64,000 bases of DNA from Zygnema circumcarinatum SAG 698-1b (Eukaryota > Plantae > Zygnematophyceae), in assembly GCA_037447605.1 (NCBI GenBank), contig CM074813.1:1116001-1180000 (forward strand), written 5' to 3'. Shown in pieces: positions 23,435 through 51,834 of this stretch. The notes under the pieces are model-generated. The model searched no databases. It had not been told where the DNA came from and saw only the letters and a list, made by a program, of their open reading frames with translations. A program made the translations under genes and the position numbers. Position 1 is the first letter of the stretch. Every line of letters begins with the position of its first letter.

Positions 23435-23627
23435 AGGGCGGGGGAGGAGAGGGAGAGAGGGAGAGGGAGAGGGAGGGAGAGGGACAGGGAGAGGGAGAGA
23501 GGGAGAGAGGGAGAGGGAGAGGGAGAGGGAGAGGGAGAGGGAGAGGGAGAGGGAGAGGGCGAGAGAGAGGGAGAGGGCGAGAGTTAGGGAGAGGGAGAGA
23601 GAGAGGGAGAGGAAGAGGGAGAGGGAA
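23435..23627. repeat. (GAGAGG)n purine tract immediately upstream of protease gene A
   Basis: Direct reading. Confidence 0.9.
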
Positions 23628-23774: not shown

Positions 23775-26700
23775 ATGGCTTCTGCCGTCCTGCTGGCGCT
23801 CCTCCTCACTCTCTGTGTCACCGCCAGCGAAGGTTCGAGTCTTACTATTCTCTCTTTCTCTCAGGCGTTAATGCTACATATATACATTTTCTGCCATTTT
23901 CCCTATGCCAGCTGATAAAGACATGGAGAACGACATTTGTTTGCCCGGAAACCTCCCCCCTCTCTCTCTCTCTCCCTCCCTCTCTCTCTTTCCCCCTTTC
24001 CCTCGCCCCCACTCTCCCCCTCTTGGAGCTCATCTCCTCCTTCCCCATGTAGTTACAAAGTTCAAGCATCACTTGCGCACTTCATGCGGCTACAGCTTCT
24101 GATAACGGAACCAAATGTCTTTTTTTTCCGTAGCAAGTCTCAGTCTTTTTCATAAGAAATGCGGTCCATGCGGGTGGCTGTGCAGGCCGACTGACGATGG
24201 GCAGCAATATGAGCGCTGTGAGCAATGACGAGAGGGGATCTCATCACGCGCGAAGTGAAGTTGGTCGACGGTTGGACTCAAAAGTGAGGGCCACGTGTCA
24301 CACCCTGTGAAGCCATACATACACGTGCTGCTTGTGAAGCTGCTGCATACATGCATACATACGTACATACATACATACATAGGGCTATCGTGTTCAAAGC
24401 AAATGGAACGAATTCTAAAGCCATTTCTTGTAAACGTCGCTTATCGGCTGCCTCGTATGTGCGCAGATGGAGCCTGTGAAGATTGAACTTCCGTGGACTG
24501 CCACTAATGCGAGCTTGAGTCTGAAAGTGACTCAGCAAGGTACGACTCCTGCCGCAACTCCGCCGCTGCTATTTGTTTTTTCAAATGCATTCACAGCGCT
24601 AAAGGCTTGGCGGAAAGACATCGATAAAGTATTCCTTGCTCCTCCTCCGACAACCATTATTTCTAGGCCAAGCGCTATTGATTGCATTGCTCTCCTGTCA
24701 CTGCGAGTCATCAGCGTAGTTTGGACAGTAGAAATGCCTCCTGAAAGCAAGCCCCTCTCCCTCTCCCTCTCCCTCTCCCTCCTCTCCCTCCCTCTCCCTC
24801 CTCTCCCTCTCCTCTCCCTCCCTCTCCCTCTCCCTCTCCCTCTCCCTCCTCCCTCTCCCTCCCTCTCCCTCCCTCCCTCCCTCCCTCTCCCTCTCCCTCT
24901 CCCTCTCCCTCCCCCGCCCTTGGCGCGCGAGCAGGGTGCGGCCCGAGCTTCAGCGGCGCGCGGTGCCCCTCCGGGTTGTGCTGCTCGTCGGCCTCCTCGT
25001 GCGGGACCCAGGCGTGGGAGTGCTCGTACGGATGCCAGAACGCGTACGGAACCTGCGGTACGGCCGCATGCGCTGCTCGCATGCATGGGGGGGCAGCCAC
25101 GTATGTATGTGCAGGCCGCTTCATGCGACTCGTCTTGTTCAACACTTAGTTCCTGACTATGAAAAGTTCCTGACTATGAAAGTGTGCAACACTCGTTTTT
25201 TGTATGAAGAATGCAGCTGTCGCCTGCTCCTTTGTTCCAGCCTTCTTGAAACTGCAAGCGCCGCAGCAGGTCCTAAGTCAAAAGGCGCTCTCCTCTTTCT
25301 CTCTCTCTCTCTATCTCTCTTCTTCTCCATTGCTGAGTTTGTACGACCTCTCATCCCATACGCGTGGCTCGGCTGCAGCCTGCGGAGCCTCACTGTACCT
25401 GCCGTGCCAGAGCGGGTTCTGCTGTTCGGCCGCGGGCCAGTGCGGGACCGACTCGAGCTCCTGCAACAGCGGCTGCCAGGCGGCCTGGGGCACCTGCCGT
25501 GAGCCTCTTTGCTATGGGGGGAGAGAGGGAGAGAGGGAGAAAGAGAGAGAGCGAGGGAGAGAGAGAGAGAGAGGGAGAGAGAAGGATGTGGGAAGGGGGG
25601 CAAGGGAATGGGGGAGGAGGAAAGGGAAAGAGGGAAAGAGAGTGATGAGGAAGGAAGAGGGGGGCGGGAGGAGGAGAGGGAGTGAGATAGAGGTACAAGG
25701 GGTCCGAGGCAGAGCTGATACAAACCCTAGTCCTATCCGCCTTTTCATTTAGAAGCGCCGCACGTATTGTAGAAATAACCTGAACTCCGCACGCCGTTTT
25801 CCTTGACTAAGATCCTTTATCTCGGGTTTGCTGAAGCTTTCTGAAGCTGCAGTGGAGGCATGTGAGGCTCTGCACAATATTCATCATGGCAGAGTGCATA
25901 TGAGACTCTCTCTGTAGGTTTCTGACGGCATGCATCGCGAGGGGGGTGCAGGCTGCGGCCCTAATTTCGGCAATGCGGTGTGCGCCGCCGGCTACTGCTG
26001 CTCCAAAGACGGCTTCTGCGGCAACACTCGCGCGGCCTGCGGCGCCGGCTGCCAGGGAAGCTTCGGCGAATGTCGTACGTTTTTTTTTTCCCTTCATCTT
26101 GATTGTTCATTGTGGAGCATCAATTAGCTCTTAGCATATGCCAGGGGGCAATCCACTGTGACTTACGAGAAGCTGCAATTTGTAGTCTTTAAGTATGCTG
26201 TTCGAGTGAAGTATGCATGGACCATGTCATCATCATTCAAGCAAAGCAACCTAATCAGGCGGAGGATATTTCCCAACTGATGCTGGTGCTAGAGAAATAT
26301 ATGGAAAAAAGGTATCATGCCTAAAGCGAGGCATTGGCGCCTGCTGCAGGATGTGGGCCAAACTATGATGGCAATACATGCCCTTCTGGAAAATGCTGCT
26401 CAACAGACGGAACCTGCGGAACGAGCCTTGATGCTTGCGTATATCATTGCATGCAGGCCTATGGGGACTGTGGTATGTGCACACTTTCTGCATAGAGATG
26501 ATGCTCATGTCATGCATGCATAGCATGCGAATGATCTAGCCGGCATTCGAAAAGCTTCTGGATTGAGCACTAACACCAGCACACTGGAGAGAGTGGTAGT
26601 TTCTAGCAGGCAGGGTTGTTTCATGTACGCGTAGCGATGCTGAATGTCCAAAGTTAGTTCAAGTGTGAAGCGGGCTGTCAACGATAGTCCAGGTTAAACC

Positions 26701-29700
26701 TTAAGATAATCAGGTTCTAATTGAAGATTGTATTTTCAGTGCGCCTTTTCGTATTAAACTTCCATGTGGTTGCAGGGTGTGGATCGCAAAATTATCGTTC
26801 CTGTGATTCCGGCTACTGCTGCTCAGGAAGTGGGTTGTGCAAAACAGACAACTCCTCCTGCGGAGCCGCATGTCAGATACAGTACGGCACTTGTCGTAAG
26901 TCGTTCTTCTCACCCCTCTTCAGGGTTTCTTTCTTGAGTTTTTGGAGTTTTGAGTATTGTCTGAGACATTATGCACAAAAGAACGCGTTTTCATTACATT
27001 GACTTCTGAATCCATGGTTGCGTTCTGCAAGCGTGGTCTTAGAAATGGGAGGAGGAATGTTCCTTGTCAATAACTCAGCATGGTTTGCGCATTCTGCACC
27101 CTCTAAGCACCGCAAGCTTTTGACTTGGACATAAACCGTACCGATGTTGGAGGGCAGGATGCGGAAGAAACTTCAACAACGCGAAGTGCCCTTCCGGCTA
27201 TTGCTGCTCGAGCAGCGGCTACTGCGCGCAGGACAGCGTCTCCTGCGGGCTCACCTGCCAACCAGACTATGGCGAATGCCGTACGGTCTCCATCTCCCTT
27301 TCATGCATCACCCCTGCCTGCATCGAGAAGCTACTCCGCTTCCATTGTTGCCACCTTCATGTTTGCCTGATGGTCGTCCATGGGGGCGGGCCTGCCTGCA
27401 GGCTGCGGGCCAAGCTATGGCGGAGCGAGATGCCCCTCAGGCTTCTGCTGCAGCAATGAGGGGAAGTGCAGCGACAGTCTGTCTATATGCTCATCATCTC
27501 AGTGCACAAATTTATACGGCGACTGTCGTAAGTGCTTCAACGCATGCACATGTGCATGCGTTTACATGTGTGTTCGACTGAAAGCGTGGGCTGTTAGACG
27601 CCGACATTTTGCGTTCTCGAAAGTGATTCATTTGGGGGTGTTGCAGGGTGCGGCGAGGGATACTTCTGGCGGTCGTGCGAGAGCGGGTTCTGCTGCTCTG
27701 CAGACGCGTGGTGCAGAGCAGACAATACTTCTTGCTCCGCAGGATGCCAACCACGATTCGGCACTTGTCGTAAGCAGGCCGTATAATGCCATGCATCTGC
27801 ATCTGCATTCGATTGCGGGTTTGAGCTTTGGATACGTTGAGAAAGAGGAGTGGCTGAAGCAAAACCTGACATTGGCACGCAATGTGATGCTGCAGGATGT
27901 GGGAAAAATTTTGGTAATACCAAGTGCCCTTCTGGCTACTGCTGTTCAGCAGATGGCTATTGTGGCACAGACAGCTCTACTTGTGGGATTGGATGCCAAT
28001 CGGACTATGGCGATTGTCGTAAGCTCTTCAAAAGCCCAACTTCAAGAAATTGCTGTTATATGGGCATTGTGCTTGATAGCTTCAATTCCCTTGTGGTCCG
28101 TCTAGGGTACACTTCATAAAGGTGATCTTTGTTGGCCCTCTCTCTGTCCACTTCACTTCACAGGCTGTGGGCCGCTTTATGGCGGAGCAAAGTGCCCTTT
28201 AGGGTTGTGCTGTCAGCCATCGGACGGGTCCTGCAGCACTCTGCAGTGGGTGTGCGCATCATCCACCTGCCAACTGGCATATGGCACATGCGGTGCGTAG
28301 CGTTTTATTCACTACTGCTAACCACCTTCCTTTTCAAGAAAACGAAGCTCCTGCTCTTAGCCTTCCATACTGAAACTCACTCTATTGGCTTGGATCTTAA
28401 TTTGAAACGTGCTGGACCTATTGATATTCTTGATAGTTTCCTTCTCACTCCTGCTTGATGTTGCCGTATTCTGCTCTCCACTCTCCCCTTCAGGTTGCGG
28501 AGCAGCATACTATTCTCGTTCGTGTGATTCCGGCTCTTGCTGCTCTTCACAGGGCCTCTGCGGAACAGACAGCTTCTCGTGTGGCCAGGGATGCCAACGG
28601 AGCTATGGCAACTGTCGTAAGTAAAAAAAAAAAAAAATACAAAAATGTATTGATATTTGGTTTCTCGCCGCTCCCCTGCTCACTTAATGCAGGCCAACTC
28701 TCAACTCATGCACTTCTCCCACGTGCTTTCGTCGGCTAGGGCAGGTTTTACTTGTTGCGCTTGAGGATGCAGGTAGCTATGGATTTTGTTTCTTCGTGCA
28801 TGCTTTGAAATGTTCTGACCCACGTTCTTCAGGAGACCCGAAAGGACCTGAAATTTGTCTTTTCTTGGGATTGTGCAGGATGTGGGCCGAACTATGGCGG
28901 AGCTGTGTGCCCCACCGGCTACTGCTGCTCGCAAGATGGCTTCTGCGGGGCGGACAGCTCGTCCTGCGGAGCAGGATGCCGAGCGAGCTATGGAACTTGC
29001 CGTGAGCTACATGTTGCCCTGCCCTGCTGTGAATGTATTCAGTTCGGAAATACTTTGTTTGATTTCGCACTTTGTAGGCTGACTCCTCATTACTTTTCCT
29101 CCATACGCTCCCCACATTCCCTCTCTTGCTTGTCTCGTCGCCCCCTCACCCTTTCCTCCTTTCCTTACTTCCTTCACTCCCAGTTGGCTTGCTTTTTCTC
29201 TCCTCCTGCTCTCCCATTTTCTCCGTTCTCTACTCCCTCGTTTTCCGTTCCCCCTCCCTCTCGCTCCCTCCTCTTGCGTATCATTGCGAGTGGATCTATG
29301 AATACGGAAAAGTAGGTGCTTGAAGCCAGCAGCCTGCTGCTGATGCCGATACGTATTTTATGCATTACTAGAATGAGTTTCACACCTCCAGTACCAGTTC
29401 CGTGGTTTATTTTCCAATAAAAAGCAACTACGTGAAAGACCCCAATGACCATTATACATAAAAAGACATGGAGAAGAATCTGCTTGGACCCTCTTCAAAG
29501 AGCACTCATTAGAGGCCGCAAAATGGCTGAAGTCCGTTTTGCCAAGCTCCTATTCCATTATGTGCATACTCTTCTGTGGTCAATTGAAAACCGAAAAAGC
29601 CAAAAGAACATGGCTCCCTTTGAAATCTGTGTGCAGCTGAATGCTCCTGTAATCTTCACCTCATTTGCAAAAGCCATTTTCATATTGCTATTGCAAGATT

Positions 29701-32700
29701 GGTTGAAAACTGATGTGTTTAACCAACCACCCTTGCAGGCTGCGGGCCTGCCAATGGCGGGGTGACCTGCCAGTCCGGCTTTTGCTGCTCCCAGGGCGGA
29801 ACTTGCAGCACAGATTTCTCCGCCTGCAGCTCACTATGCCAACAGGGCTATGGCGACTGCGGTAAAACCCCGCTAGTTCAATGGGTCAACTTATGCGCTG
29901 CAAATTTACGACTGTCCTTCTGCCTCCACTCTCAGGGCCGTGGTCAAACAGTGTGACTTCAATTCCTAACCAATGGTTGGGCTCTTGTAGGATGTGGGCC
30001 TAGCTACAACTACGTGCAATGCGCCACCGGTTCTTGCTGTTCATGGAATGGCTGGTGTGGAACAAACAACACATACTGTGGGCCAGGTTGCCAAAGGGGC
30101 TACGGCGATTGTGGTGAGTGCATGTTTTCTAAGTTTGCTCTGACCACTTTCCGTCGATCACCATGGAGAAAAGGTTCAATCTGACTTATGGGTTTGGCTT
30201 AGCTTAAGGACACTACCGCAGGAGGAGAAGAAGTTCTTGGAGTGTAAGAAGGGTAAATGGCATTCTTGATAGATATCGAGATGGAATTACTCGGGATGAA
30301 CAAGCCCATTCGCTTACAAGTGACTAGTTGTGGACTTACGCTTGTAGGTGCAAATGCCCTCCCACCAAGTCCACAACCTCCACGCTCGCCACCCCCTCGG
30401 CCTCCCCCTCNNNNNNNNNNCCCCTCCGCTGTCCCCATCTCCTCCTCCCCCTTCACCTCCTCCGACCCCGTCTCCTCCCCCTCCTTCTCCTCCTCCACCA
30501 TCTCGTCCTCCTCCCTCTCCCGCTCCATTATCTCCATCCCCTCCGCCCCCATCCCCTCCTCCTCCCTCTCCCCCTCAACTACTTGCATCCCTACCGCCCC
30601 CTTCCCTTCCTGCTTCTCCCTTTCCTCCCTCTCCTCCACCACGCCCCCCCCCTCCTCGCTCTCCACGCCCTCCTCCTTCCCCCCCACGCTCCCCACCTCC
30701 TCCCCGTTCCCCTCCTCCTCTCCGGTCCCCTCCTCCTCCCCGTCCACCCCCACGCTCCCCTCCTCCTCTCCGTTCCCCCCCTCCTCTTCGTTTCCCCCCC
30801 CCTCCCCGTTCCCCCCCTCCTCTCCGTTTCCCCCCTCCTCCCCGTTTCCCTCCTCCTCCCCGCTTTCCTTCTCCTCCCCGTTCTCCTCCCCCACTGCCCC
30901 CGTCTCCTCCTCCTCCTTCCCCTCCTCCGCCTCCCCCCTCCTTCCCTCCTCCTCCTCCCCCTCCACCATCTCCTCCTCCTCCATCCCCTCCGCCTCCTTC
31001 TCCTCCCCCCCTCCCTCCACCGTCTCCACCTGCACCACCGCCACGTGGTATAGCCCTACCCCTTTTTGCATACACACATGCTGATCCTACCGTGCATGTT
31101 AGTGCTTCACCTGAAATTTCACGCTGGGAGCCACCCCTGGGTGAATCGTTTGTGGCTGGCCTCAATGTCTTCGATTTTTTTTACTGATTATGTGTAGAGT
31201 AGGATTCGTTCGGAACATGGCACTGCTAAAAAAACAAAAATCGGAGTCCACAAATCATGAGTGAAGACATGTTTTTCCGTTCCTACGCTCCTCGACTTTC
31301 TGAAGATGCCACTTATACTTCCAACCATTCCGCTCATACGGATTGGCCTGTGCAGACGATCGCAAGGGTGGATTAACAGTGGAACCAACTGTAAGAGTCC
31401 GATACATGAACACATACTTCCGGTACACAAGCTCGGGATTCATCAATTCGGATGACGTGACGCAGTCTTGGGTCGGTGCCAACTACTGGAATTGGGCAAA
31501 GCAGACTGGAGTGGTTCAACCGGTGAAGGACCAAGGAACATGCTGTGAGTGATGAACCTCACCTCGTCCATTTCAAAGAGTATGAGACTGATTTTCAAAA
31601 ACGCGTCAACTGATTGCTGATATTGTGCTCAGAGAAAAGAAGAGTCAAGGCAGTTTTCCACGTCTTCAAACTGTTCACGTCACGTTGAAGTCATATGGCT
31701 AATGGTGAATACATAGAATCTGTTTTAAGTCACGTGCTATGCTGGCTTCTGTGCAGTTACTTGCTGGATTTATGCCCCGGTCGGCGCAATCGAGAGCGCA
31801 TATTTTATCGCCAATGCTAAGCGCTTAAGCGTGACGAGCATTTCAGAGCAGCAAGTTCTGAACTGCAACAAGCTGAACCTCACGTGCATGAGTGGCGGCT
31901 GGCCAACGAACACCCTCAACCTTGCATCGACAAATGGGCTTCTCTTTTCGTCGGAATACAGTGTATCAAATGACTGTGACTCCCAGGTAAAATTTCTGCT
32001 TGAATCACCACTGTAGGTACATTATGCACTTGTTTTCTATTATGTGGCAGAAATGCTCTTTTGTTCGGAAGCATTGTATCATTGTGAAACATAAAGAAGG
32101 CCCCCCAAAAAAGTAACATTCCAACGCCCCTCGGCTAACTTTTCATAGAACCTCACTACAGTACTGGCAAAAGATTAGACTCCACTCCACCTTCGGATCC
32201 CATTTATTAATAATGTCACTTTATACAGTTTCATAAATACATTCTCTTCAGATGAAGAATCAGAATTTCTGCATTGAGTTACGCTCAATTGACTTGGATC
32301 ATATTGCTCTTCTATTATATTAGATACATTTTTCAATATTTCATTTGCACATTTCTGTTGCATGGTAACTTCACTATTTCACAGTCCGGTCACTGATGTG
32401 GAGATGAAACAGAAAGCCATCCTTGTATTGCGTGCAGGTGCCGAGCTCTGTGAGGATATCTGCATATGAACAGGTCAATGTGAACGATTGGGTGGGCCTC
32501 TGGTTGGCCCTTCAGCAGCAGCCGGTCATTGTGAACATCGAGGGAAGCAGTGACAGTTTTGTCAACTACAATGGCACGGTGCGTATGTAAGCTTCACTAC
32601 TGCAGTTTCTGCGGCAGTGACAGTACTCTTACGGTCTTCGGACTTCTGCTAAGTGTGTAGCTATTCTGACTGTCAAATGCTGGCGATATAGTTGAACTTA

Positions 32701-35679: not shown

Positions 35680-36467
35680 AGCAGGGATTAGGGCACCGCC
35701 CGTGGAGGGACACCAGATTTACTTGTCACTCATTCACATTGTGACCTTCCTTCCTCCTCCCTCGCATTGATTCATTGAGTTGTTACTTTCTGGCCCCTTT
35801 AGAGGGCTCCCCTCCTCTGCGGGCCATCATCAAAGGCTGGAGTTGCACTGAATAAATAAATAAATAAATATTGTGATGGAGGTGTCACTTGCTCACTTCC
35901 AGCAGGCGCATGACGGACGCATCCCTCAAACCCTAAACGTCCCTCAATCCCAGGGGTCATGTGCACGCAAGCAAAGACATCAACACGTTTCTCAAAACTC
36001 TGTCTTTATTTCGTCTAAGACCTTCATACATTTCACTGCATCCTTCTCGCTGTCTCTCTCTCTCTCTCTCTCTCTGTGCTGCTCAGCTCCATCTCTTCTC
36101 GAAATAAAATAAAAGTATCGAAATAAGTCCGACAACAACAACAGCAACAACAACAATAACAACAACATCAACATGCACGCAAGCGCCGAGGCCGACGTTT
36201 GCCGTCCTCGGCGCGGTCCCCTCGTGGTTTCTGTTGGGTCAGAGAGACTAAATTGGCCGCCCGGAGGCAAGGCTGGCTGACTGTACGGCAAGCGGCTGGC
36301 ATACAATTTGCGAAGTTGCGAGTCCGCTGCGCGACAGAACTGACACGTGGCAGGACGTACTTCGCCGATGGTCGGCCGCCACGTGACGTAATATGAACAG
36401 TTTTGAAACAATGACTTTCTGTCGTCATTTGTGACGTTTGCTTACGTCTGCAGAACACATGCGGACA

Positions 36468-38791: not shown

Positions 38792-38884
38792 NNNNNNNNN
38801 NCGTGATTAGCCGAAATGAAAGTACAGTTTTTTCCCGAAAGGGGGCGCGGATATCCAAAAAGTGGGGCGCCTGTATCATTTTCC
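37395..38884. mobile_element. MULE-like long-TIR MITE; its left end is at 37395 and its true right end at 38884, after the gap
   Basis: Left TIR GGAAAATGATACAGG at 37395 and right TIR ...CCTGTATCATTTTCC ending at 38884. A perfect 9-bp TSD ATTTTTTTC lies at 37386-37394 and 38885-38893; 9-bp TSDs are typical of Mutator. Confidence 0.85.
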
Positions 38885-39560
38885 ATTTTTTTCTGTCCGC
38901 CAATAATAGGGGGAGTCAGACCTTGACCATCGCCCGCGGAATTGAAAGATTTCGCCGGCGGAAAGGTATTGATTTCGATTTCCGAATTCGGATCGGAAAC
39001 CACGGCTCCCCCCGAACCTGTCTGTCACGTCCGTACGGTGGAATAGGTTACAAAAATGGCCCCAAATTTCAGAATTCCGCGCTCCGAAACGGGGGGCCTT
39101 CCGTTTCGAAATTCCAGCTTTCCGCCGATGAGGAATCGTGCCCCGCCTTGTCGCCATGCGCGTCACGCACGGGCGAGCGCCTCTCGCACGTGTGAGGCGC
39201 TCGTGGCGACAAAACGGAGGGCGGCGGGCGGCGGGCGGCGGAGGGAGCGCGGGGGGACGAAAAGGGGGGAGTCAAACCTGGCCCGGAGATACCGAAGGTA
39301 AAATAATTGCTCTCTTGAATTCGCGGCGCCCGAGCCTGTCGAACGTCCACTTTTGGCGGAAAAGGCCTGCCGTACAACGCGGAATTGGCCCGACGGTCGC
39401 GGAATTGGTTTGGCGATGAACAAGGTCTGACTCGCGCGGCTGCTTCCAACCAGACGGGGTCCGCAGTTTGTTGCGAGAAACCAACCCAACCCGGTTCGAG
39501 GCGAGTTTGCGGCTTGCTTCCGCCCTCACGACAAACCGCCCGAACCTACGGGGGAGATCG

Positions 39561-40060
39561 CCCCTGCGGCTGTACGGACCAGCCGCGTCCAGCGTCCTGG
39601 ACGAGAAACGATTTGCGTTGAAAAAGGCCGAGGAACCGGAGAACTCGCCCGCGCGGGCGAAGAAACAACAAACGCAGGATACGACGCACGGCCCTCTAGC
39701 CCATTATTAGGGGCGCTGCGCGCACTTGCCGAATCCTTGTCGCCTTTTGGGGCGGCGTACTGCAGAAGGACCAGATTGTCGGCACAGTTGTTCGTACGCC
39801 TGTCATGTACGGCAGGCCCGCAAAATGACGGAACCGACCGACCTCCCGCTACGCGAGCGGCGCTAGTGCGCCGTACGGAGGGCACAAACGTTCGTACGAA
39901 TGGACACAGTTTCGTACGGACGGCCCACAGCGGTGCCGGCACACCAATGGCGTCGCAGCGGCGGCGACTGGATGCGGTTGATTGCTGTCCGGTCCGTCCA
40001 CCCTTTTCAACGCAAATCGTTTCTCAACCGGGACGCGATTGGTCCGTACAGCCACGGGGT
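39561..40060. mobile_element. Degenerate foldback/MITE-like element in the promoter region of gene B
   Basis: Inverted arms GGCTGTACGGACCA...GAGAAACGATTTGCGTTGAAAA (about 39568-39625) versus TTTTCAACGCAAATCGTTTCTC...TGGTCCGTACAGCC (about 40003-40053). No TSD seen. Confidence 0.6.
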
Positions 40061-40386
40061 ACTGTTTCTGGTGTGGCACGCGCCACAAGAGATATGGTTT
40101 TCAAGCCGACTTTTGGACGATAGCGGGGAGTGGACCGCCGCCGCCGCAGGCGGGAGGGAACGGGGACGGGGACAGGCCGACGGAGCCGCCTCCGTCAGTC
40201 CGTCCGGCCGTCGGGGCGGGCGGGAGGGTAGGGGAGGGGAGGGAGGGGAGGGAGGGAGGGGAGGGAGGGGAGGGAGGGAGGGGAGGGAGGGAGAGAGCGG
40301 AGGGGAGAGAGCGGAGGGGAGAGAGCGGAGGGGAGAGAGCGGAGGGAGCGGAGGGAGCGGAGGGACTGACGGCGGGCGGGCTCGCC

Positions 40387-43300
40387 ATGGTGCAAATGTA
40401 CGGACGGTAGCGCTGGCGGTCTTCTTGGCGGGGAGAGGGGAGTGGGAAGAGGGAAGAGGGGAGAGGGGAGAGGGGAGAGGGGAGAAGGGAGAGGGGAGAG
40501 GGGAGAGGGGAGGGGAGGGGGAGAGAGAGGGATGAGGGGAGAGGGATGAGAGGGATGAGGGGAGAGGGATGAGGGGAGAGGGATGAGGGGAGAGGGATGA
40601 GGGGAGAGGGATGAGGGGAGAGGGATGAGGGGAGAGGGATGAGGGGAGAGGGATGAGGGGAGAGGGATGAGGGGAGAGGGATGAGGGGAGAGGGATGAGG
40701 GGAGAGGGATGAGGGGAGATGGTGGAAAGGCGAGTAGAGATAGGAAGGGAGATGGGAGAGTGAGGAGAAATGCGAGAGGCGAGAAGGAGGAGAGAGAGGC
40801 GAGAAGGAGCGGGGGAGATGAGGGGAGAGGGTAGAGAGGAGAGAGAGGGGCAAGAGGAGAGGGAAATGGGGACTACAAGCAGGGAAATGGGGAGGAGTGA
40901 AGCTAAGAGGGAAGAGGGGAGGGGAGGAGGGCAGAGGGACGTGTGGAAAGACTGAGGGGAGCGAGGCGGAGAGAAAGAGGGAGAAGGAGTGGGAAGGAAA
41001 TGTAGCCTGAGAGAGTGAAAATATAGGAAAGGGTAATGGAACGGGAGCTAACAGGGAGTGCGAGAGAAACGGGAGACCAGGAACGAAAGAATGTTCTTTG
41101 GAGGGAAAAACAAAGCAGATGGAGTTGATTGGAGACGGAATGAGCGGGAACACGCCTCGTAGTGAAAGGAAGGATCAGAGTGGGATTGGTGAAGGACAGA
41201 GGGAAAAGGAGTGGGAAGACAAATAAAAAGGCATGGAGGCATGCGGTTGATGATTCTAGCACACTGTTTAGTCAAAGAGAGACAGTATCGTTCACTAAAC
41301 AAAAAAAAAAAAATAGTGGGGAATGGGAGACAGACTGCATATGCTTCTGCTTGTTCAGTTGGCTGGTTATTTTTCGGCCATATGGAACATGGAGAGGTGG
41401 TCGTGAAAGAGACTACAAGCAGGCAAATGGGGAGGAGTGAAGCTAAATGTAGCATTCTAATTTTTCCGCGTTGCCTTCCTTTCTTTTAGAGAAACCGATA
41501 GCACGGCGTTATATGCTGAACATTGTGCAAAGTCTTTGGGGTTGATGCAGTCGAAGGCCCCTCGGCTCTAGGGCTTTACTCTTGTTCGTCTTTCTCGCCG
41601 GTCTCTCGTTGCTGGCGGATGCAAGGAGTAAGAATTCACAACTTGAGACTCCTCACCTTGAGTTACATTCAAAGCGAGCAAGAAGTTGTAGCTTTAGCAG
41701 GTTGTCTGCACTTTCAACATAATTCTACACGCATTTCATGGGTACGAATATCTTAATATATATCTTAATACTGTATACTTTACTTTTTTTTTTTTTTTCA
41801 TTTTGGTTTCTTTTATTGACATTTTTTCTCCCTTCGATGCTTACTGAATTCCTCGTCCGCAGCTACATTGAGGATATGATTTTTTTTGTCGTTCTAAATG
41901 TACTCCAGTGTCCAGCCTAACAGAAGCCTGCATTCAGACGCTGACCAGCTGAAGGTTTAGTATATTGTACAGTAGCAAATATGCGAGAGACGTACGTTCT
42001 ATGCTTATAGTTGCCTTCACTGTGAAACAAGTTCCATGCCGTATGCGCATTTAGCTGCACAAATCCTTTCAGCCAAAAGGATATCATCCGAGTCCCAGCG
42101 TGAGCCTTCGTTATTCACTTTCCTCTGCATGGCGGCATACCCTTACTTAGGGCTTGGTGAAGCATCTTTCGAAGTTTCACCCAAACATTCTAGACTCCTA
42201 ACAACCACTTATGGCAGGGCCTCGAGCACCTCCACCTCCCTGGTCAAAGGTGAAGCCGTTTCCAACACGCGGATTTCCTCCCCCTCCTTCACCACCATCA
42301 CCACCTCCCCCAACACCTCCTCCTTCACCCCCGCCCCCACCATCTCCTCCACCGCCCCCTTCTCCTCCTCTCCCACCCTCTCCTCCTCCGTCCCCTCCTC
42401 CACCAACACCTCCATCCCCTCCTCCATCCCCTCCTCCCCCTCCGTCACCTCCACACCCACCGCCTCCTCGCCCACCTTCACCCCCTCCACCTCCGCCCTC
42501 ACCACCTCCATCGCCCCCACCATCACCTCCTCCCCCAAGCCCTCCTTCTCCACCTCCTCCCCCAAGCCCTCCCTCTCCACCTCCTCCTCCAAGCCCTCCC
42601 TCCTCCACCTCCTCCCCCAAGCCCTCCTTCTCCACCTCCTCCCCCAAGCCCTCCTTCTCCACCTCCTCCCCCAAGCCCTCCTTCTCCACCTCCTCCCCCA
42701 AGTCCTCCTTCTCCACCTCCTCCCCCAAGCCCTCCCTCTCCACCTCCTCCCCCGAGACCTCCTTCTCCACCTCCTCCCCCAAGCCCTCCCTCTCCACCTC
42801 CTCCTCCAAGCCCTCCCTCTCCACCTCCTCCCCCAAGCCCTCCTTCTCCACCTCCTCCCCCAAGTCCTCCTTCTCCACCTCCTCCCCCAAGCCCTCCCTC
42901 TCCACCTCCTCCCCCGAGACCTCCTTCTCCACCTCCTCCTCCAAGCCCTCCGTCTCCACCTCCTCCCCGAAGCCCTCCTTCTCCACCTCCTCCCCCAAGA
43001 CCGCCTTCTCCACCTCCTCCTCCCAGCCCTCCTTCTCCACCTCCTCCTCCCAGCCCTCCTTCTCCGCCTCCTCCTCCAAGCCCTCCTTCTCCACCTCCTC
43101 CTCCCAGCCCTCCGTCTCCACCTCCTCCCCGAAGCCCTCCCTCTCCACCTCCTCCCCCAAGACCACCTTCTCCACCTCCTCCTCCCAGCCCTCCGTCTCC
43201 ACCTTCTCCCCCAAGCCCTCCTCCACCTCGACCTCCTCGATCCCCTCCTCGATCCCCTCCTCGATCCCCTCCTCGATCCCCTCCTCCCCCAAGACCTCCT

Positions 43301-46300
43301 CCACCTCGACCTCCTCGATCATCTCCTCCCCCACCCTCTCCACCGCCGCAGCGGCCTCCTTCTCCCCCTCCTTCACCTCCCCTGCCACCTCCACTTCCCC
43401 CCCCACGGCCACCACCATCTCCTCCACGAATTTCCACAACACAAGGTGCCCCCTCAACTTCCTTTCTGCTAATGCCGGGAAATTTCTGAACTATTGTCGT
43501 CATCAGCGTACTCCTGTCTAATGCGATACAAAATAGGCGAGAAATGGCATAGTGTATGCTATGTTTTAGTGGTATGGCATGGTTTCTCTGACTGAGGGCT
43601 TTCGTTTGAGGGCTTTTTTTTTTTTTTTTCGGACTGAGGGCTTTTCATTGTGTGGTTTCCGCCCCACCAAAGTTTGGAACCCTCCCATGCTGCCCTCTGC
43701 CAATCGGGGAACCCTCTGGCGGTTTGAAATACAGTGTAGCCTCGATAAAGTGCTTACTACATGGTAAGTTGAATCAAGGATTTACCATGAAGAACGGAGC
43801 ACAGGAAGTTCTCGTACGGTTTAGTCACTCTGTCATTTGTACCGAGTGTAACGGGCCGATGGGGGCAACCTTTCGTACCAAAGGGGAAAACCTAGTGCCG
43901 TAGCTTTCAAGCCATCGTGTTCTTTTTGGTTTAGGAAAGCGAGAGAGCATTATCTTAAGCTAAACTTTCTGAGGTAAGCTTTAATTTATCGAGGTTTTAT
44001 TTCGACAAAAAGTACACCGTTCTTCTATGAGCAGCACATCATCCCGGCGGCCGACGACTCCTTGCGTGACGTACGAATGCTCCAAAAAAATTGCTATCCC
44101 CGATTCTGGCGGTACAGTAGTCTGCCGCGATATTTGCGATAGACTGACGATATACTGATTGCCAGGCCCTTGAAAACACTGGCTACCAGTAATGTGTACA
44201 GATGTGGCTACCAGCAATTCTTTAATCTCCGCCTTCGTTGTTTATGTTGTGCCAGAGGAAATCCTGTTGAAGGTCAAAGCTGCTATTACGACAGACCCCG
44301 CCGGAGTGCTGCGAACATGGTCGCCTGCAACGGCTGCATGCGACGGAGGATGGAGCGGGGTCGATTGTGGCGGCACCGCTCTTGTCCAAACCATGTAGGT
44401 CCGCTTGTGCTCAACGTGTCACAATTTCTCCATGCGGCATAACGAATGACCCGGCTACGAATTGCATATCTGGAATACGTTCTGCTTTGAGGTGATCAGT
44501 GCTTTGGTTGCCCACTGCAGAAAACTCAACAATGTGAATCTGAGGGGAACCCTATCGCCATTCATAGGCGAACTGGTCAGCCTTCAGGAATTGTAAGTAG
44601 AAAGGATGTATCGTAGATTAATGCTGTATGCATAAAGCATTTGGATTCGAGAAGTGGCTTATCTCTGTTGCATTCGCCAAAACTTGATATCGTTATATTT
44701 GCAGCTCAGGTTGACGCTGTCACGTCATCATGGGTTTCCGTTTCACTCATACTTGCAGGAATTTGGCGGGCAACCAGTTTCAGGGCACCATACCAGCTTC
44801 CATTTTCAGCCTTCCCAACCTCAAGATCTTGTAAGAAATAATTTTATGGTAATATGTTATGTGATGTTTAACTTGTGTTTTGTGATGCCATTGGCTCTGT
44901 GCATCACTAATCTATTCAAGCATCCTCGTTTTTGGATAACATTCAATAAAGGCGGACATCTTTACTGCACCATATGTGCAGTGTTCAGTTGGGCATTTAG
45001 AACTTGGGATGGAATGTCAACAAGATATTCCTTGGGAATTGCTACTAATCTTCCTCTTTTGTTGGCCTTCTGCAGAAACTTGGAGGGCAATAATCTGACA
45101 GGCTTTATCTCTACCTTCCTCACAGCATCGATTGCTAGCTTGACGACTCTGCAAGAATTGTATGGCTACTGCTAAGCAATTTTTTCCACTGTATCAATTC
45201 ATCATTATTGATATGAAAGGCTTCAATAATGTGATGCGATCTCACTAGAAGAGATCTCTCTGCCAGACATATCTACTGGAATAAGGGAAAATGCTTCGTA
45301 AGACTTTGGTTGTAGCTTTCTTTGACGTGACATTTGGAAGGTTCTATGGGATTGCAGACGTCTTGGCAAGAATAAGTTTTCTGGTGCTATTCCGGACACA
45401 TTGGGGAACGTAACATCTTTGCGCATACTGTGAGTATTGCTTTGCTTAACCCTTTCAAGTAGCAGGTGCCATGATGGGATTCTCACCGGTCGGATCAATG
45501 AAAAGAGCAGATTAAGGGGGTAGTAGAGGAGTGGAGAGATTGGGGGACTGATGTTTGCCTGAATGAGCCTAAAACAAGATCCTTTTCTGCTGTACTTCAG
45601 AACCTTAGATGGGAACAACTTGACTGGCGAAATTCCGGACTCGCTCGGGAACTTGACCGGCCTCTACAGACTGTATGTCAATCGTGGCCTTTCGCACATT
45701 TTTATTGTATAAAGCGCATTTGAAGTTTTAGCTGCTGCAGAAATATGCCTTGGTAAAGGGAGACACGTTTGAGCCAAGCAGAGTACTTCAGATGTACTCT
45801 ATCTGAATGCTGAGGGAAAAAACGAATTAGTTTTATAAGTAGTTAAAAATCTGTATTTGTTCCTCCTTTTCATTTCTTTTGGTGCAATCCTTCCCAAGGA
45901 CGGCTCTATTTGAAGCTTAGATAGTGTGTGCTATGAAGGCATGCTAACAAATGCATGGGTTGCTTTTCTGGCAGGACTCTGAACAACAATAAACTTACAG
46001 GACTGATTCCGTCGACCTTCAGCCAATTTCAGAGTTTGAGCCAACTGTGCGATATGTGACTCTTAACTTCAGTTGCATGAATGGCCATGAGGGAATTTAC
46101 GTTTGTCGTGAATGCACTTCTTATACTTAAAAATGTTCTGGAGTAAAAGTGAGAAGATAGAACTTTGGAACGCGACAGAGGCGAGAGAGCAGGAAGGAGA
46201 GGGCAGTGTGGATAGGGGAGGGGGAGAGGTAGATCAGGTGTGTGTGTGTGTGTGCGTGTGTGTGAGAGAAAGAGAGAGAGAGAGAGAGGATGCAGGAACT

Positions 46301-49300
46301 TTCTCAAGCAAGCTCAATCCCCGAAGCTTGACTTGTTTCCAAATCACAATAAATGAGAAAATTCTTTGGTCCTTGTATGCAGGGATCTGAGCGATAACCT
46401 CCTCTTCGGCTCTGTTCTGATCCAAATAAATTCACTCATCACTCCCACTATCAATTTTGACTCCAACTATTTGTCCGGATCGCCATTGCTTACAGTCAAT
46501 GGCAACCAGCAATGCGGCAGCTTTTCAAGCAACTGCTTCACCTTTGCTGAGACATGGAACGCTGTTTGCGGCGCCAAGCCATCTCTCCGAGGAGACTGCG
46601 GCAGCTTCTGCAACGCTTCCCAGGCCATGGGGGCATGCGGCGGCCATGGCTTCTGCTCAGGGATCAATGGAGTCTGCACCTGCGATGCGGGATACTCTAA
46701 CCAAGACTCTCCATTCACTTGCATATTTGGTATGTCCCCCTCAAACAGAAATTCTTTACATGAAAATCCTGTCTGATTTTCGGAGACCTTCTTCTCACCT
46801 TTTCCAGACTTTTCCGCCATGAGCAGACCCTTCTTTCATATCTGTTTCCTTCCCCCACTTCCCAGTCCCCCCCCCCCCTTCCCTCCTTTTCCAACCCCAC
46901 ATCTTCATCATCTTCTTCATCTTCCCATCTTCTTCATCCTCTCATCTTCTTCATCCTCCCATCGTCTTCATCTTCCCATCGTCTTCATCTTCCCATCGTC
47001 TTCATCTTCCCATCTTCTTCATCTTCCCATCTTCTTCATCCTCCCATCTTCTTCATCTTCCCATCTTCTTCATCTTCCCATCTTCTTCATCCTCCCATCT
47101 TCTTCATCTTCCTTCCCATCTTCTTCATCTTCCCATCTTCTTCATCTTCTCTTCATCTTCTTCATCCTCCCATCTTCTTCATCTTCTTCATCTTCCCATC
47201 TTCTTCATCTTCCCATCTTCTTCATCTTCCCATCTTCTTCATCTTCCTTCTTCATCCTCCCATCTTCTTCATCTTCCCATCTTCTTCATCTTCCCATCTT
47301 CTTCATCTTCCCATCTTCTTCATCTTCCCATCTTCTTCATCTTCCCATCTTCTTCATCTTCCCATCTTCTTCATCTTCCCATCTTCTTCATCCTCCCATC
47401 TTCTTCATCTTCCCATCTTCTTCATCTTCCCATCTTCTTCATCCTCCCATCTTCTTCATCTTCCCATCTTCTTCATCTTCCCATCTTCTTCATCCTCCCA
47501 TCTTCTTCATCTTCCCATCTTCTTCATACTCCCATCTTCTTCATCTTCCCATCTTCTTCATCTTCCCATCTTCTTAATCCTCCCATCTTCTTCTTTTTTC
47601 CCCCCCTTTTTCCTTCCTCCCACTCGCAGAGGACCGCGGGCTGGGTCTGGAGGAGCCCTCCGCGCCGCGCCTCGCACGTGTGAACGCGTACTTCCGGTAC
47701 GCGAGCGCGGGGTACCTCGCGGGGGACGGCGGGGACTCCGCGTGGCTCGTGGCGACCAGGTGGTCCTGGGAGGGCCGCCGGGCGGTCCCCGCGGTCAGGG
47801 ACCAGGGGACCTGCAGTGAGGACCCGCCCGCCCGCCCGAAATTTCGTCAAGGCTTTTTTTTTTTTTTTCCTCAAAAAAAAGTTAAAAAAAAAGTCGAGAT
47901 GGAGAGTCATGCTTCTGTACAGCTCGGAAGATAGTTTAACGTTGATTGAATCTTTCACTGCTCTGTCGATTGGGCTCAATCTGTAATGGAATTTGAGCAG
48001 AGTGTTTTAGATGTGGGTTTGAAAGGCTATCATCACCGTCGAGAGAAACATCTTCACTGCAAGGATGTGTTTCTGTTCTTCGGACAAGGGAGAGGAGGTG
48101 GAAAGGAGGAGGGGAGGGAGGATGAAGTAGTGCAGAGACGTATGCATGCTAAACGTTGCTGCTCGTTGTGCTGTTCCCCTGTGGTGCATAGACACGTGCT
48201 GGGTATTCGGGCCCATATCCGCCATAGAGAGCGCGGCATACATCGGCGGAGGGGGCCTGCAGGCCGTGCCTGTGCTCGCGGAGCAGCAGGTCATCGACTG
48301 CTCCGCTCTCAGCACCGACTGCACATCAGGAGGCAATCCGTCGGACGCATTTGAATATGCGGAAAATTCGAACCTCATCCCCAACAGCTCCTATGCTGGC
48401 CCTTCAACATGCGCTGCAGGGCAGGTAATTGCATTGTGACAGTCAATCACATCTCTCTCTTTCTCACTCTCTCCCTCTCATTCACTTTCTCTTTCTCTTT
48501 CTCACTCCCGCTCTCTCGGTGCTTTTTTGTAACCAATCCTTTGCTGCTTTCGTTTTCAAGACCGTGTTGCTGTTTTATTGAATGAATCAAATTGAATCAG
48601 TTGCACTTGTTCGCTTGTTTAATGTAACTTTTTTGAATGCAGGCTGGGAGTAGCATACGCATATTGTCATATGAAAGAGTACAAATGAATGGCTGGCTGG
48701 GCCTGTTGTTGGCCCTCCAACAGCAGCCCGCAGTTGTCAGTATTGAAGCGAGCAGCGAGAGTTTCATCAATTACAACCCTCAGATGGTGAGTGTATGATC
48801 TCATGTTAAGATTACATTACATCCTGGTTCAGGGAAAGATCATCGCCAGGGACAGTTTCCGTTAAGTGATACGAATAATAAAAAGCAATTGAGCATGCAT
48901 GCATGTATGCATGCCTGCCTGCATGGGCATGCTGAATTCTAACTAGAGCATGGCCGTGCAGGGCACATATGAGGATGAGGACTGCTTCTCCAATGGAGTC
49001 GACCACGTGGTGGTAGTCGTCGGTTACGACTTAACATCCTCTCCGCCGTATTGGCTCATCCGAAATTCATGGGGTTCAGCCTGGGGAGAGGGCGGCTACA
49101 TGCGCATGAAGATAGCAGGGGGGGACGGGATCTGCGGAATCAATACCCAGCCTGCTCTAATTCCGAACATTCGGCCCAAAAGTAAGTCAAACCTAAAGCG
49201 TTTGTTGTGAATTATGTGACCTTAACAACGCTCTATGCAGGTAAGGCATCATGTATAGTGCTGGTTGCCCTCTCTCTAGAAGCAGTCGAAGCTTGAACCT

Positions 49301-51834
49301 TACCTGGCTAACTCCACCTGACCAACTCACGTTACATGCGCAATCGTTGCCTTTTTTGCAGCAAACGACCCATGCAACCTTATTGACAACTTCCCTCAGA
49401 GAGCCCTCCGCTCGAGATATGGTCCGGGAGAGATGAACCCTTGCGGCAATGGCGTGTGCATTCCGGCCGGCTCCTTGAACGAGTGTTTGTGCGCTCAAAA
49501 CTTTGTGGCGGTGACGAACACAGACGGCATGCAGACATGCGCCCCAGGTCAGATACAATGTCACGGAAATGCAGCTTGTGACCAACTTTGACCATGTCTG
49601 CATGTGACCAACTTTTCTCTATTCGAAGTGGTTTGTAGGGGAGGAGTGCTTTTGAGTCAAGACTGGCAATTAGTTTCTGTACATGGATACGAGAGACTCC
49701 TCGGATTGCGGTATGCCTGATGTTTTTTAATGCATTGATTTTGGCAGCGTCGCCCTGCACATTCACGCCGAAGAATCCATGTGGAGTGGGCACATGCGTG
49801 GACTCCACCGCAGTCCCGGGGACATATGCATGCGTGTGCCCTATTGGCTATGCTGCTGACTCCGTAGACAGTGTTCAGACATGCTTTCCAGGTGCCTCCA
49901 TCATCCCTCCCTCTCTCCCCTCCTCCCTCTTTGTGTGTGTGATGGGTGTGCTGAACACTGCGTTGCTTTCATTGATCAGTTATGAGGTATGTTTTGTGAT
50001 GAATGATTTCATTCACAGCCTAGTCCATGCCTTGCTTTGCTGAATAGTGTGTGTAGATTTCCTAGCACTTGTTGTCTGCAAAGTGCATACTTATGGATGG
50101 ATACAGCACACTTCCTTTCTCGACATCACGAAAAAGAAGATCAAGACTAGGAAAGCCTTCAAATTGCTATCCTGCTTGTATAGAATGGTTTTGAATTTAA
50201 AAAGTGGCGAAATCGTGTGAGTAGAGTCGATCGAATCCAAAAAGAAGAGTGAGTTTCGTTCTTTGAGATGAAGTTTGTGCTGGCATGCTTTCTAGATAGT
50301 GTCTGAATTAGAAGTTCCAAAACAGCCGATGTATGGATTCATTCATGCAGCCACTCATTGGGCAGATTATGCCTCTGTACACAACTTCTGATGTTGTCAA
50401 CTTTTGCATAAAAACCGAGTGACAGATTCTTTGTTTGTCAATTGGAATTGCAGCGGCTGCCTTGCAAGGTCGTAAATTGAACTTCACTGTGCCCGAGAAC
50501 ATCACTCTGCCCTGCTCCACAATCTCCAGCGTGTACGGCATCCCCGCAGTTGAATTCGCTTCACAGAACCCGGTAAACTGGACCTCTATGCTCTAAATAA
50601 TGCTTTTCGTCGCAGTTATTTCAACGCTGCCGCTTGACTGGTAAAGCTCCAACATTGGAAATTAGATACCTTTGTCGTTTCTATCTGCAACGATAAAGTG
50701 TGGTGCAATGCACTGCACCTGCAGGGTCTAAATTGCAACGCAACCTTGGGATCGGGAACATTGGTGAATGTGACTAACGCTCGCAACTGTTCAGTGACAT
50801 ATTCGGTGAATGATGTAAGTTCTTTCAAATACTCCCTAACCCAGCTTTTGAACTAGAAGTGTGAAAGTAATCTTGCTCTTGTTCTTTCCTATCAGATGAG
50901 AAAGTTTACGACCCTCGACGAACTACAACATCTTTATATAAATGCATGTATTCTCAGTCATGTTCAATCTCGCCTTCTGATTGTGTTGCAGGGTGACACG
51001 TGCGCCTCCATTGAGCAACTGTTTAACCTAACCACACTTTCCGGCCCGGATTCTCCAAACCCGGACCTGGACTGCTCACAGCTTCAGACTTTTCAGCAGG
51101 TAAACAATGACTCCTCCAACAACCACTGTTTTTATTATTAACCACTGTTAACAACTGTCTATTGTTATGTTAAGTCAAATTTCGTTTTCCAAAAACGCAG
51201 GCAAATCACTCCTTCCCTACTTCTTGCAGATCTGCTCCCAGCTAACGTGTAGCTTTATCTCATCTTTCGCAGATCTGCATTCAGGGAGGAGTAGTGGAAT
51301 ACCAAGGACCGTGCACGAAATTGTACACTGTGCAGGCGAGCGAGACGTGCCTGTCCATCATACGCGACCTTCTGGATGGCGACGCGTTGAAGTTCTACAC
51401 TCTGAACCCCGGAGTGCACTGCGGGCAGCTGCAGGTCTCTTCGGGGGCTGGCGGATTTGTTCAAGAGGTGAACTGCAAACTCTTTCTTCCTTCAAAACAT
51501 TTTATCCCTTGCCTTTTGTTGTCAGTCCGATATTTTAATACGCCTTTCCGTCAGCCTCCACGGATCAACTGAGGATGTGCGGAATGTCCCGCAGGTCTGC
51601 CTCGAAGCGGGAGACTTGGGAATCAGCACAGGGTGCTCCGGCTACAGTTTGCGCATTAAGAACACTGACTCGTGCTCGCGTCTGAAGCCGTGCTTCACGA
51701 AAAAAGAGACGTTCAAGAAGCTCAACAGCGGCAAGGCGTGCACTGCCAAACTCCTCAAGAGCATTGTCGGGACGGCGGCTCCTAATTTATGTGTGCCTAA
51801 AGTGAGGCAAGCAAAGTGTCCGTACAGCTATTAG
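40387..51834 (+). CDS. Gene B: secreted signal peptide-extensin-like (SPn) stalk-LRRNT-LRRs-EGF-papain C1A protease-2x EGF-4x LysM-like protein (23 exons, about 1,387 aa; apparent +1 frameshift near 42602)
   Basis: Exons 40387-40406, 41551-41627 (RALLLFVFLAGLSLLADA), 42055-42099, 42218-43445 (Pro-rich) and 44256-44394 (LRRNT, W..VDC). LRR exons 44521-44592, 44759-44830, 45076-45159, 45358-45429, 45601-45672 and 45975-46046, then 46383-46729 (LRR end plus EGF). Papain exons 47630-47815, 48192-48424, 48643-48786 and 48962-49181 (RDQGTCNTCW, VDHVVVVVGY, IRNSWG). EGF exons 49362-49547 and 49748-49891. LysM exons 50454-50572, 50725-50814, 50992-51099, 51273-51467 and 51595-51834. Confidence 0.88.
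40520..40720. repeat. 14-bp tandem repeat (GGGGAGAGGGATGA)n in intron 1 of gene B
   Basis: About 14 near-perfect copies read directly, within a larger purine tract at about 40420-41000. Confidence 0.9.
42535..43215 (+). repeat. Coding 27-bp minisatellite (CCAAGCCCTCCTTCTCCACCTCCTCCC)n encoding PSPPSPPPP
   Basis: About 25 variant units, inside the Pro-rich exon of gene B. Confidence 0.9.
46900..47590. repeat. Intronic pyrimidine minisatellite, unit about 17 bp (CATCTTCTTCATCTTCC)
   Basis: About 690 bp of CATCTT/CTT/CC variants between the EGF exon and the first protease exon of gene B. Confidence 0.92.

Follow-up and report, generated by a model that had tools for sequence, protein, structure and literature searches.

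Papain-type (C1A) proteases are represented in plants by RD21, Rcr3, Pip1 and XCP, which have an I29 prodomain and, in some cases, a granulin tail. In algae, many of these proteases do not belong to the cathepsin B, F, H or L groups (PMC2474614), and the only physiological role reported for an algal C1A protease is that of a Volvox enzyme, itself outside those groups, which the sex pheromone induces (PMC2474614, citing Amon et al. 1998). The joining of a hydrolase to a binding module that tethers it is familiar from class I chitinases. A related arrangement reportedly occurs in VcPap-11 of Volvox carteri, said to have been described by Amon, Haas and Sumper in 1998 (Plant Cell 10:781) as a wound-inducible as well as pheromone-inducible cysteine protease with an extensin-like spacer and three chitin-binding repeats. 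Here we describe two neighboring genes, A and B, from the zygnematophyte Zygnema circumcarinatum SAG 698-1b, which encode papain-type proteases carrying epidermal growth factor-like (EGF) and LysM modules behind two different sets of N-terminal domains. Compared by description rather than by sequence, VcPap-11 differs from them in its chlorophyte origin and in having no leucine-rich repeat (LRR), EGF or hevein modules.

Because Zygnematophyceae are sister to land plants, the proteins they use for extracellular recognition and defence bear on the origin of plant immunity. The window analyzed is a stretch of 64,000 nucleotides (assembly GCA_037447605.1, contig CM074813.1, positions 1,116,001 to 1,180,000 of the forward strand); all positions below are counted within it, and all exons lie on its plus strand. 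It is eukaryotic DNA with about 50% G+C and four gaps of 10 N. Genes A and B are real tandem paralogues that have one protease-EGF-LysM body, referred to here as the cassette, and different N-terminal heads. Gene A is expressed, gene B is well modelled, and both belong to an unstudied zygnematophyte family. The core of the original prediction, two genes with a common cassette and unrelated N-termini, was confirmed by tblastn, splice sites, exon lengths and intron phases. Full-text literature searches returned no paper describing either the cassette family or the Volvox architecture.

Comparison of region A with region B by tblastn gave 11 collinear plus-strand matches at 33-67% identity (31343-35664 in A, 47617-51801 in B). 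With AG and GT sites in place, the exon lengths previously proposed for A and B were reproduced exactly (189/186, 230/233, 141/144, 220/220, 186/186, 141/144, 116/119, 90/90, 111/108, 195/195 and 225/240 nucleotides), and the intron phases are identical in the two genes (1,1,0,0,1,1,1,0,0,0,0). Entered in phase 1, both spliced cassettes form an open frame to a stop codon, giving 613 residues in A and 620 in B. These are 49% identical overall, with values of approximately 50-53% for the protease, EGF and LysM parts taken separately. The two heads are unrelated, and each joins the cassette at a phase-1 intron, as had been proposed. Within the heads the module exons are phase-symmetric (1-1 for hevein, 2-2 for LRR), as expected under exon shuffling. 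The tandem pair appears to represent an exchange of heads between close paralogues at a phase-1 intron. No cassette-like match that could indicate a third tandem copy was found in the window outside genes A and B.

The first four cassette exons (31356-31544, 31757-31986, 32438-32578 and 32819-33038 in A; 47630-47815, 48192-48424, 48643-48786 and 48962-49181 in B) encode a pre-segment and the papain C1A domain. Pfam, folding and length-filtered searches were run on single exons or on homologues rather than on the spliced A and B proteins. Single exons exceeded the Peptidase_C1 (PF00112) cut-off of 20.7 bits, with scores of 36.6 and 66.1 in A and of 36.9 and 66.6 in B. Both genes retain the catalytic residues Gln19, Cys25, His159, Asn175 and Trp177 (papain numbering), in agreement with the earlier claim; these residues lie in the motifs VKDQGTCFTCW, IDHSVLLVGY and RNSWG of A and VRDQGTCNTCW, VDHVVVVVGY and RNSWG of B. 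An AlphaFold2 model of the cassette of a homologue, not of a window protein (P0171, residues 540-1178), was confident, with a predicted local distance difference test score of 84 and a predicted TM-score of 0.86. Its protease domain superimposed on papain-like structures with TM-scores of 0.92-0.95 and root-mean-square deviations of 1.5-1.9 Å, and the nearest solved structures were plant papain-like enzymes and cathepsins K, S and L. A Foldseek search of this cassette model against the PDB gave protease-domain matches only, and the ESM Atlas search gave only generic C1 clusters with scores of at most 0.78.

The I29 propeptide (PF08246, ERFNIN-type), a hallmark of cathepsin L-like enzymes and plant papain-like cysteine proteases, was absent from all scanned members of the cassette family, while the ordinary papain-like matches in the same searches carry one. 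Instead, a conserved pre-segment of approximately 45 residues (N..FRY.S.GF) precedes the mature protease domain, and nothing else separates the latter from the stalk or EGF module. The parallel with the apoplastic proteases Rcr3 and RD21, drawn in the original prediction, is thus a loose one. The cassette has the C1A fold and catalytic residues in common with RD21, Rcr3, Pip1 and XCP, but neither their prodomain nor a granulin tail, and it is combined with carbohydrate-binding and LRR modules that those enzymes do not have.

Cassette exons 5 and 6 encode two EGF-like domains (33417-33602 and 33731-33871 in A, with joints seen in four transcript runs; 49362-49547 and 49748-49891 in B, assigned by splice sites, phases and homology to A). 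The Pfam EGF scan covered the cassette exons of A, in which these two exons matched the six-cysteine EGF model (PF00008) at 25.3 and 27.7 bits, above the cut-off of 21.5. The LysM region and the stop codon occupy exons 7-11 (34206-34321, 34561-34650, 34792-34902, 35082-35276 and 35455-35679 in A; 50454-50572, 50725-50814, 50992-51099, 51273-51467 and 51595-51834 in B). The homologues P0102 and P0019 pass the Pfam LysM threshold at 69.6 and 67.4 bits. A hidden Markov model of the LysM unit, made from homologues only and then run on the A and B cassettes, placed units at residues 380-416, 429-477 and 488-541 of the A cassette with E-values of 7e-9 to 3e-15 and a further one at 561-592 with an E-value of 0.006. 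In gene B it gave three units at 1e-10 to 6e-16 and a fourth at 1e-3. By these profiles, the cassette is predicted to contain three clear LysM units and one degenerate or weak unit, all of the disulfide type.

The C-terminal profile of the family matched solved LysM structures (5bum, E-value 5.6e-11; 4pxv, 2.9e-8; Ecp6, 8.5e-5), and its best sequence matches are chitin-binding LysMs, namely those of the Equisetum and Pteris chitinase A, Ecp6 and a Volvox chitinase, with CERK1 matching weakly. The LysMs of the fern, Equisetum and Volvox chitinases, Ecp6 and CERK1/CEBiP are of the eukaryotic type with an internal disulfide, like those of the cassette (5bum, 4pxv, 4b8v and 5k2l; 7vs7 weakly). The cassette differs from these proteins in carrying four tandem, putatively ligand-binding LysM units at the C-terminus of a protease.

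The head of gene A begins with an exon that provides the start codon and a signal peptide, MASAVLLALLLTLCVTASE, and ends in a phase-1 donor at 23832 (23775-23832; a sequence model outside the span of the transcript mapping). It is followed by hevein (CBM18) exons recognized by their eight-cysteine pattern, the first seven at 24935-25057, 25379-25498, 25952-26074, 26350-26472, 26776-26895, 27158-27280 and 27402-27527 and the remaining seven at 27647-27769, 27896-28018, 28164-28292, 28494-28616, 28879-29001, 29739-29861 and 29991-30113. The predicted number of 14 hevein domains was recovered by a regular expression, which found 14 cores from 24937 to 30121, one to each exon of 120-129 nucleotides. 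These exons begin two bases before the first cysteine codon and end one base past the last, so all hevein introns are in phase 1. Together with the signal-peptide exon they form one open frame of 594 amino acids, with a single residue between domains. A long GGGAGA/GAGAGG microsatellite block lies upstream of gene A, at 23421-23626.

All eight cysteines are invariant in the 14 hevein units. With the Pfam Chitin_bind_1 model (cut-off 27.8), unit 14 scored above threshold at 34.3 bits and unit 1 below it at 22.7 bits. A profile of the 14 units matched solved hevein domains, with pokeweed lectin-C (1ulk) at an E-value of 1.3e-16 and wheat germ agglutinin, class I chitinase and hevein down to 1.5e-4. 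The eight-cysteine domain is thus the one found in class I chitinases, wheat germ agglutinin and pokeweed lectins (profile E-values of 1e-16 to 1e-6), and the tethering logic proposed below for gene A would be that of class I chitinases. Gene A differs from known hevein/CBM18 proteins in placing 14 units on a protease and not on a glycosidase, and most of its units are without the aromatic triad. Mean identity between units is 0.55 at lags of three and six against 0.46 at other lags, which gives modest support for a period-3 super-repeat in the array. The units with a stacking aromatic mostly recur at every third position.

Between the hevein array and the cassette lies a proline-rich, extensin-like stalk exon (SP3-5 repeats; 30348-31047), which ends in phase 1 and has transcript joints on both sides. 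In 233 residues it contains 146 Pro, 34 Ser, no Tyr and no Lys, with many SPPPP motifs; the Tyr cross-link motifs of extensins (YXY and VYK) are absent from it. The upstream splice sets window frame 2, which reads GANALPPSPQPPRSPPPRPPP as far as an assembly gap at 30411-30420, and the downstream splice sets frame 0, which gives 208 Pro/Ser-rich residues past the gap. The open frame thus differs before and after the gap, and the 10-N run is therefore not the true length. The left transcript contig overruns 30410 by 20 C-rich letters, and right contigs reach 26-48 letters beyond 30421. Continuity of the stalk across the gap is probable, with contigs overrunning both edges and none reading through. 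The resulting model of gene A comprises 1441 residues or more.

In six public runs of one organism, approximately half of the words sampled from 30421-38791 are present, and transcript contigs of four of them (X1, X2, X3 and X6, from three studies) were placed on 29700-35690. The GT..AG joint from hevein 13 to hevein 14 (29861/29991) is present in four runs, with a loose end matching the end of unit 12, and the joint from hevein 14 to the stalk (30113/30348) in two of them, X1 and X2. Two contigs, X3-13 and X6-19, follow the genome collinearly over 30529-31047 and resume at 31356, running through cassette exons 1 and 2; the 156 letters between their listed pieces correspond exactly to 30891-31046. 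The G at 31047 and the first two bases of exon 1 make one codon, so the stalk joins the cassette in phase 1 and in frame. Every cassette junction of gene A is present in transcript contigs at the modelled position, and contig X6-20 extends from exon 4 to at least 380 nucleotides beyond the stop codon. Low-depth intron-retaining contigs also occur, as RNA libraries would give. The proposed splicing of the head to the cassette, as opposed to two separate genes, is accordingly supported by in-frame joints of hevein 14 to the stalk and of the stalk to the cassette in contigs drawn from four public runs.

For gene B, a candidate first exon at 41545-41627, a sequence model alone, contains the signal-peptide-like segment RRPLGSRALLLFVFLAGLSLLADA (41552-41624), of textbook form, and a phase-1 GTAAGA donor, the phase of which fits the acceptor at 42218. 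A start at 40387 was rejected, as it reads MVQMYGR and then a stop, without a signal peptide. A scan of 38800-44200 for a methionine followed by a hydrophobic run gave only AT-rich, intron-like open reading frames (ORFs). Signal peptides had been predicted on both proteins; the one on A is present and the one on B was not confirmed, with no signal peptide from 40387 and the candidate segment lying 1 nucleotide out of frame with the nearest ATG. Apart from the signal peptide of A, neither model contains a segment resembling a transmembrane helix, as predicted.

The candidate exon is followed by a Pro/Ser-rich stalk exon (42218-43445 in frame 2, or to approximately 43507 in frame 1), in which all three frames are open. 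Its SPPPP/SPPSPPPPP repeats include a tandem repeat of period 27/54/81 at 42524-43221. The large ORF at 42036-43472 does not encode LRRs but is this tandemly repeated Pro/Ser-rich stalk. An LRRNT exon comes next (44256-44394; Pfam LRRNT_2 31.2 bits, cut-off 20.7), then six LRR exons of 72-84 nucleotides in phase 2-2, for which splice sites and phases were modelled by hand (44521-44592, 44759-44830, 45076-45159, 45358-45429, 45601-45672 and 45975-46046). The head is completed by an exon at 46383-46729 that combines the final LRR with a cysteine-rich EGF-like module and ends in phase 1. The head proposed earlier for gene B (proline stalk, LRRs and EGF) is therefore reproduced as stalk, LRRNT, seven LRRs and an EGF-like module, the last with an EGF_2 score of 19 bits that is below the Pfam cut-off.

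The LRRs of gene B are seven plant-specific 24-residue repeats of the form LxxLxLxxNxLxGxIP. Searches by tblastn with family proteins missed its 72-nucleotide LRR exons. The assembled LRR head matched Pfam-verified LRR regions of family members by blastp with E-values down to 4e-37, and the head-cassette junction is collinear with the transcript-derived protein P0172, in which the head ends at residue 402 and the cassette runs from 408. No internal stop occurs in the model from the stalk to the end of the cassette. LRX and PGIP-type LRR proteins have LRRNT_2 and 24-residue plant LRRs like those of gene B, and LRX proteins also have an SPn-rich region. Gene B differs from LRX in the reversed order, with the stalk before the LRRs, and in having its LRR head on a protease; the stalk of gene A differs in having no Tyr cross-link motifs. 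In gene B, a 17-bp tandem repeat, CATCTTCCCATCTTCTT (46900-47593; 41 copies, 91% matches, Tandem Repeats Finder score 1110), takes up most of the intron that separates head from cassette; it is open in all three plus-strand frames and could pass as coding.

A full scan of 1.84 billion representative sequences with exon 4 of gene A as query returned many long proteins that contain the entire cassette at 30-45% identity and extend N-terminally beyond it by 100 to more than 1000 residues. Their sources are at least eight Closterium strains, Mesotaenium endlicherianum, EukProt transcriptomes and a Leptophrys vorax transcriptome, and all are entered as 'unnamed' or 'hypothetical'. In the representative collection, exon 4 of gene A had no match above 68% identity, and the last head exon of gene B had none in the protein collections; the window's own A and B proteins therefore seem to be absent from the collections. 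A profile search showed a clean break between the family, at 334 bits or more, and ordinary cathepsins at 164 bits, and gave no land-plant or chlorophyte member of the cassette family, which by this evidence appears to be restricted to Zygnematophyceae. The top match among AlphaFold DB clusters was a 590-residue 'LysM domain-containing protein', aligned to model residues 66-639 at 20% identity, so papain-LysM proteins exist elsewhere.

Heads of the family members found elsewhere consist of LRRs, LRRs with a legume lectin, or a lectin alone. The relatives in Closterium and Mesotaenium thus support the idea of a constant cassette with varying heads. The closest known counterparts are LRR-(legume lectin)-papain-EGF-LysM proteins of Closterium and M. 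endlicherianum (CAI5959345.1, GJP36725.1 and Mesen1 ME000166S01720), which have the whole cassette of approximately 600 residues in common with A and B at 30-45% identity. Their domain order is that of A and B, they have no I29 domain, and their LRR-EGF head aligns with that of gene B. The architecture of gene B (LRR-EGF-papain-EGF-LysM), for which the original prediction knew of no characterized protein, therefore already exists in public annotations of these two genera, as unnamed proteins. Unlike gene A, all of the Closterium and Mesotaenium relatives retrieved lack both a hevein array and a stalk between head and cassette, and no hevein motif was found among the first 150 family proteins retrieved.

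A maximum-likelihood tree of 57 cassettes groups A and B with the Logan transcript protein P0007 in one clade (SH-aLRT 100), which lies within a group with LRR and lectin heads. The clades around A and B have LRR heads, and the hevein head of A therefore looks, most simply, like a later replacement. The most likely history would be a local duplication, after which phase-1 exon shuffling put the hevein head of A in the place of an ancestral LRR-EGF head. Two proteins attributed to L. vorax (P0020 and P0164, EukProt EP00475) fall inside a Closterium clade. This organism is an alga-eating amoeba, and its cassette proteins probably derive from prey RNA. In Closterium sp. NIES-65 the cassette of P0109 is fused to a C-terminal aldo/keto reductase and P0138 has a weak Myb/SANT match; both are probably merged gene models.

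Taken as a whole, the domain content suggests with somewhat better than even confidence that A and B are large, secreted, non-membrane C1A proteases tethered to glycans and belonging to a family restricted to Zygnematophyceae. Solved relatives of the hevein and LysM modules bind polymers of N-acetylglucosamine (GlcNAc). These modules would hold the enzyme on chitin, chitosan or peptidoglycan surfaces, for which the walls of fungi, chytrids or bacteria are candidates. The proline-rich rod would act as a spacer, the tethered protease would cut proteins at the bound surface, and the LRR head of gene B would add binding of a protein or peptide partner. By this reasoning the role of A and B would lie in defence, with a role in the alga's own matrix being less likely. 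Several results weigh against such an assignment. An aromatic at the position equivalent to Trp23 of hevein occurs in only six of the 14 hevein units (3, 6, 8, 9, 12 and 14), and the full sugar-stacking set (Trp21, Trp23 and Tyr30) in unit 14 only. Exon 10 of A taken alone scored 18.1 bits with Pfam LysM (PF01476), below the gathering threshold of 20.9, the remaining units being split by introns, and exon 10 of B gave no match. Nor does an architecture that lacks the I29 prodomain account for the folding and latency of such a papain. In gene B, the only ATG adjacent to the RRPLGSRALLLFVFLAGLSLLADA segment, at 41545, is 1 nucleotide out of frame with it, with a run of four C between them; this offset may stem from a base-count error of the assembly in the C run or from an additional small exon upstream, or the frameshift may be genuine. 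Finally, the gap at 30411-30420 interrupts the stalk of gene A, no single contig covers all of this gene with head and cassette, and depth in run X1 is uneven: it reaches 200-750 over the cassette from the end of exon 2, 5-9 times the approximately 55-98 of the hevein exons, with exon 1 almost uncovered.

These last three observations would also be expected if gene A were a chimera, by annotation or assembly, of a hevein lectin and a separate protease gene. We consider this very improbable, together with the related idea that the A and B proteins are inactive, lectin-like adhesins: the in-frame GT..AG joints on the two sides of the stalk exon are found in two and three runs, respectively, head and cassette have similar depth in X2, X3 and X6, the modules are separated by neither a stop nor an alternative start, and the catalytic residues are intact. 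The depth step in X1 could result from 3' bias or from a shorter, cassette-only transcript. A role in the alga's own wall or in mating, in which the proteases would act on its matrix during division, conjugation or protoplast release and the heads would bind self glycoproteins rather than microbes, seems unlikely to us. The stalks are extensin-like, the LRR head is similar to wall LRR proteins, the genes are expressed in ordinary culture runs of three studies, and the pheromone-induced Volvox enzyme provides the one physiological role reported for an algal C1A protease (PMC2474614). On the other hand, hevein and LysM modules indicate GlcNAc polymers, and many divergent copies with varied lectin heads suit an arms race better than housekeeping remodelling. 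GlcNAc polymers are not known to be a major component of zygnematophyte walls, which also counts against an own-wall role.

The original prediction went further than tethering and interpreted the pair as pattern-recognition proteases with a fixed effector cassette and interchangeable sensors. Paralogy, the fixed cassette and the exchange of heads are supported by our analysis; the signal peptide of gene B, the newness of its architecture and the parallel with Rcr3 and RD21 are not. A ligand-gated protease, in which a microbial pattern bound by the head or the LysMs would activate the enzyme or release a perceived signal, would account for the occurrence of the modules of land-plant pattern receptors (LRRNT with 24-residue LRRs, EGF and LysM), and the usual I29 latency device is missing while a conserved pre-segment stands ahead of the protease. 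Such gating nevertheless appears quite improbable, as there is no membrane anchor and no kinase, plain tethering of the kind found in chitinases with hevein or LysM modules explains the architecture equally, and the main sugar-stacking aromatic is restricted to the six hevein units listed above. More broadly, the family unites building blocks of plant pattern receptors (LRR, LysM, EGF and lectins) with a papain-type enzyme, in many divergent copies. It might conceivably represent an extracellular immune system of the algae nearest to land plants, in which a single secreted molecule wires receptor-type recognition modules (LRR, LysM and lectins) directly to a protease effector and pathogens drive the swapping of heads through exon shuffling. 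Such a system would serve in place of the receptor-kinase logic of land plants or have foreshadowed it, and a papain that has no prodomain would be targeted or activated when a ligand is bound; we regard this extension of tethering as doubtful. Since the proteins are expressed and the genes tractable, hypotheses of defence, wall remodelling and mating are directly testable in Closterium-type model algae.

The region between the two genes contains another assembly gap (38792-38801), which touches no coding exon; the stop codon of A lies 3.1 kb upstream of it and the first candidate exon of B 2.7 kb downstream. Short direct and inverted repeats flank this gap, with 37373-37880 matching 38806-38914, and may be the ends of a repeated element. 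The intergenic ORFs in 35992-41153 contain no Pfam domain; they include a low-complexity minus-strand ORF of 350 amino acids (40101-41153). A second GGGAGA/GAGAGG microsatellite block is located upstream of gene B, at 40214-40861. Further away are two unrelated neighbors, a plus-strand ORF of 705 amino acids (17176-19293) with a weak coiled-coil-type WEMBL match below the cut-off and a minus-strand ORF (4815-5660) with a Helicase_C_2 match of 89 bits.

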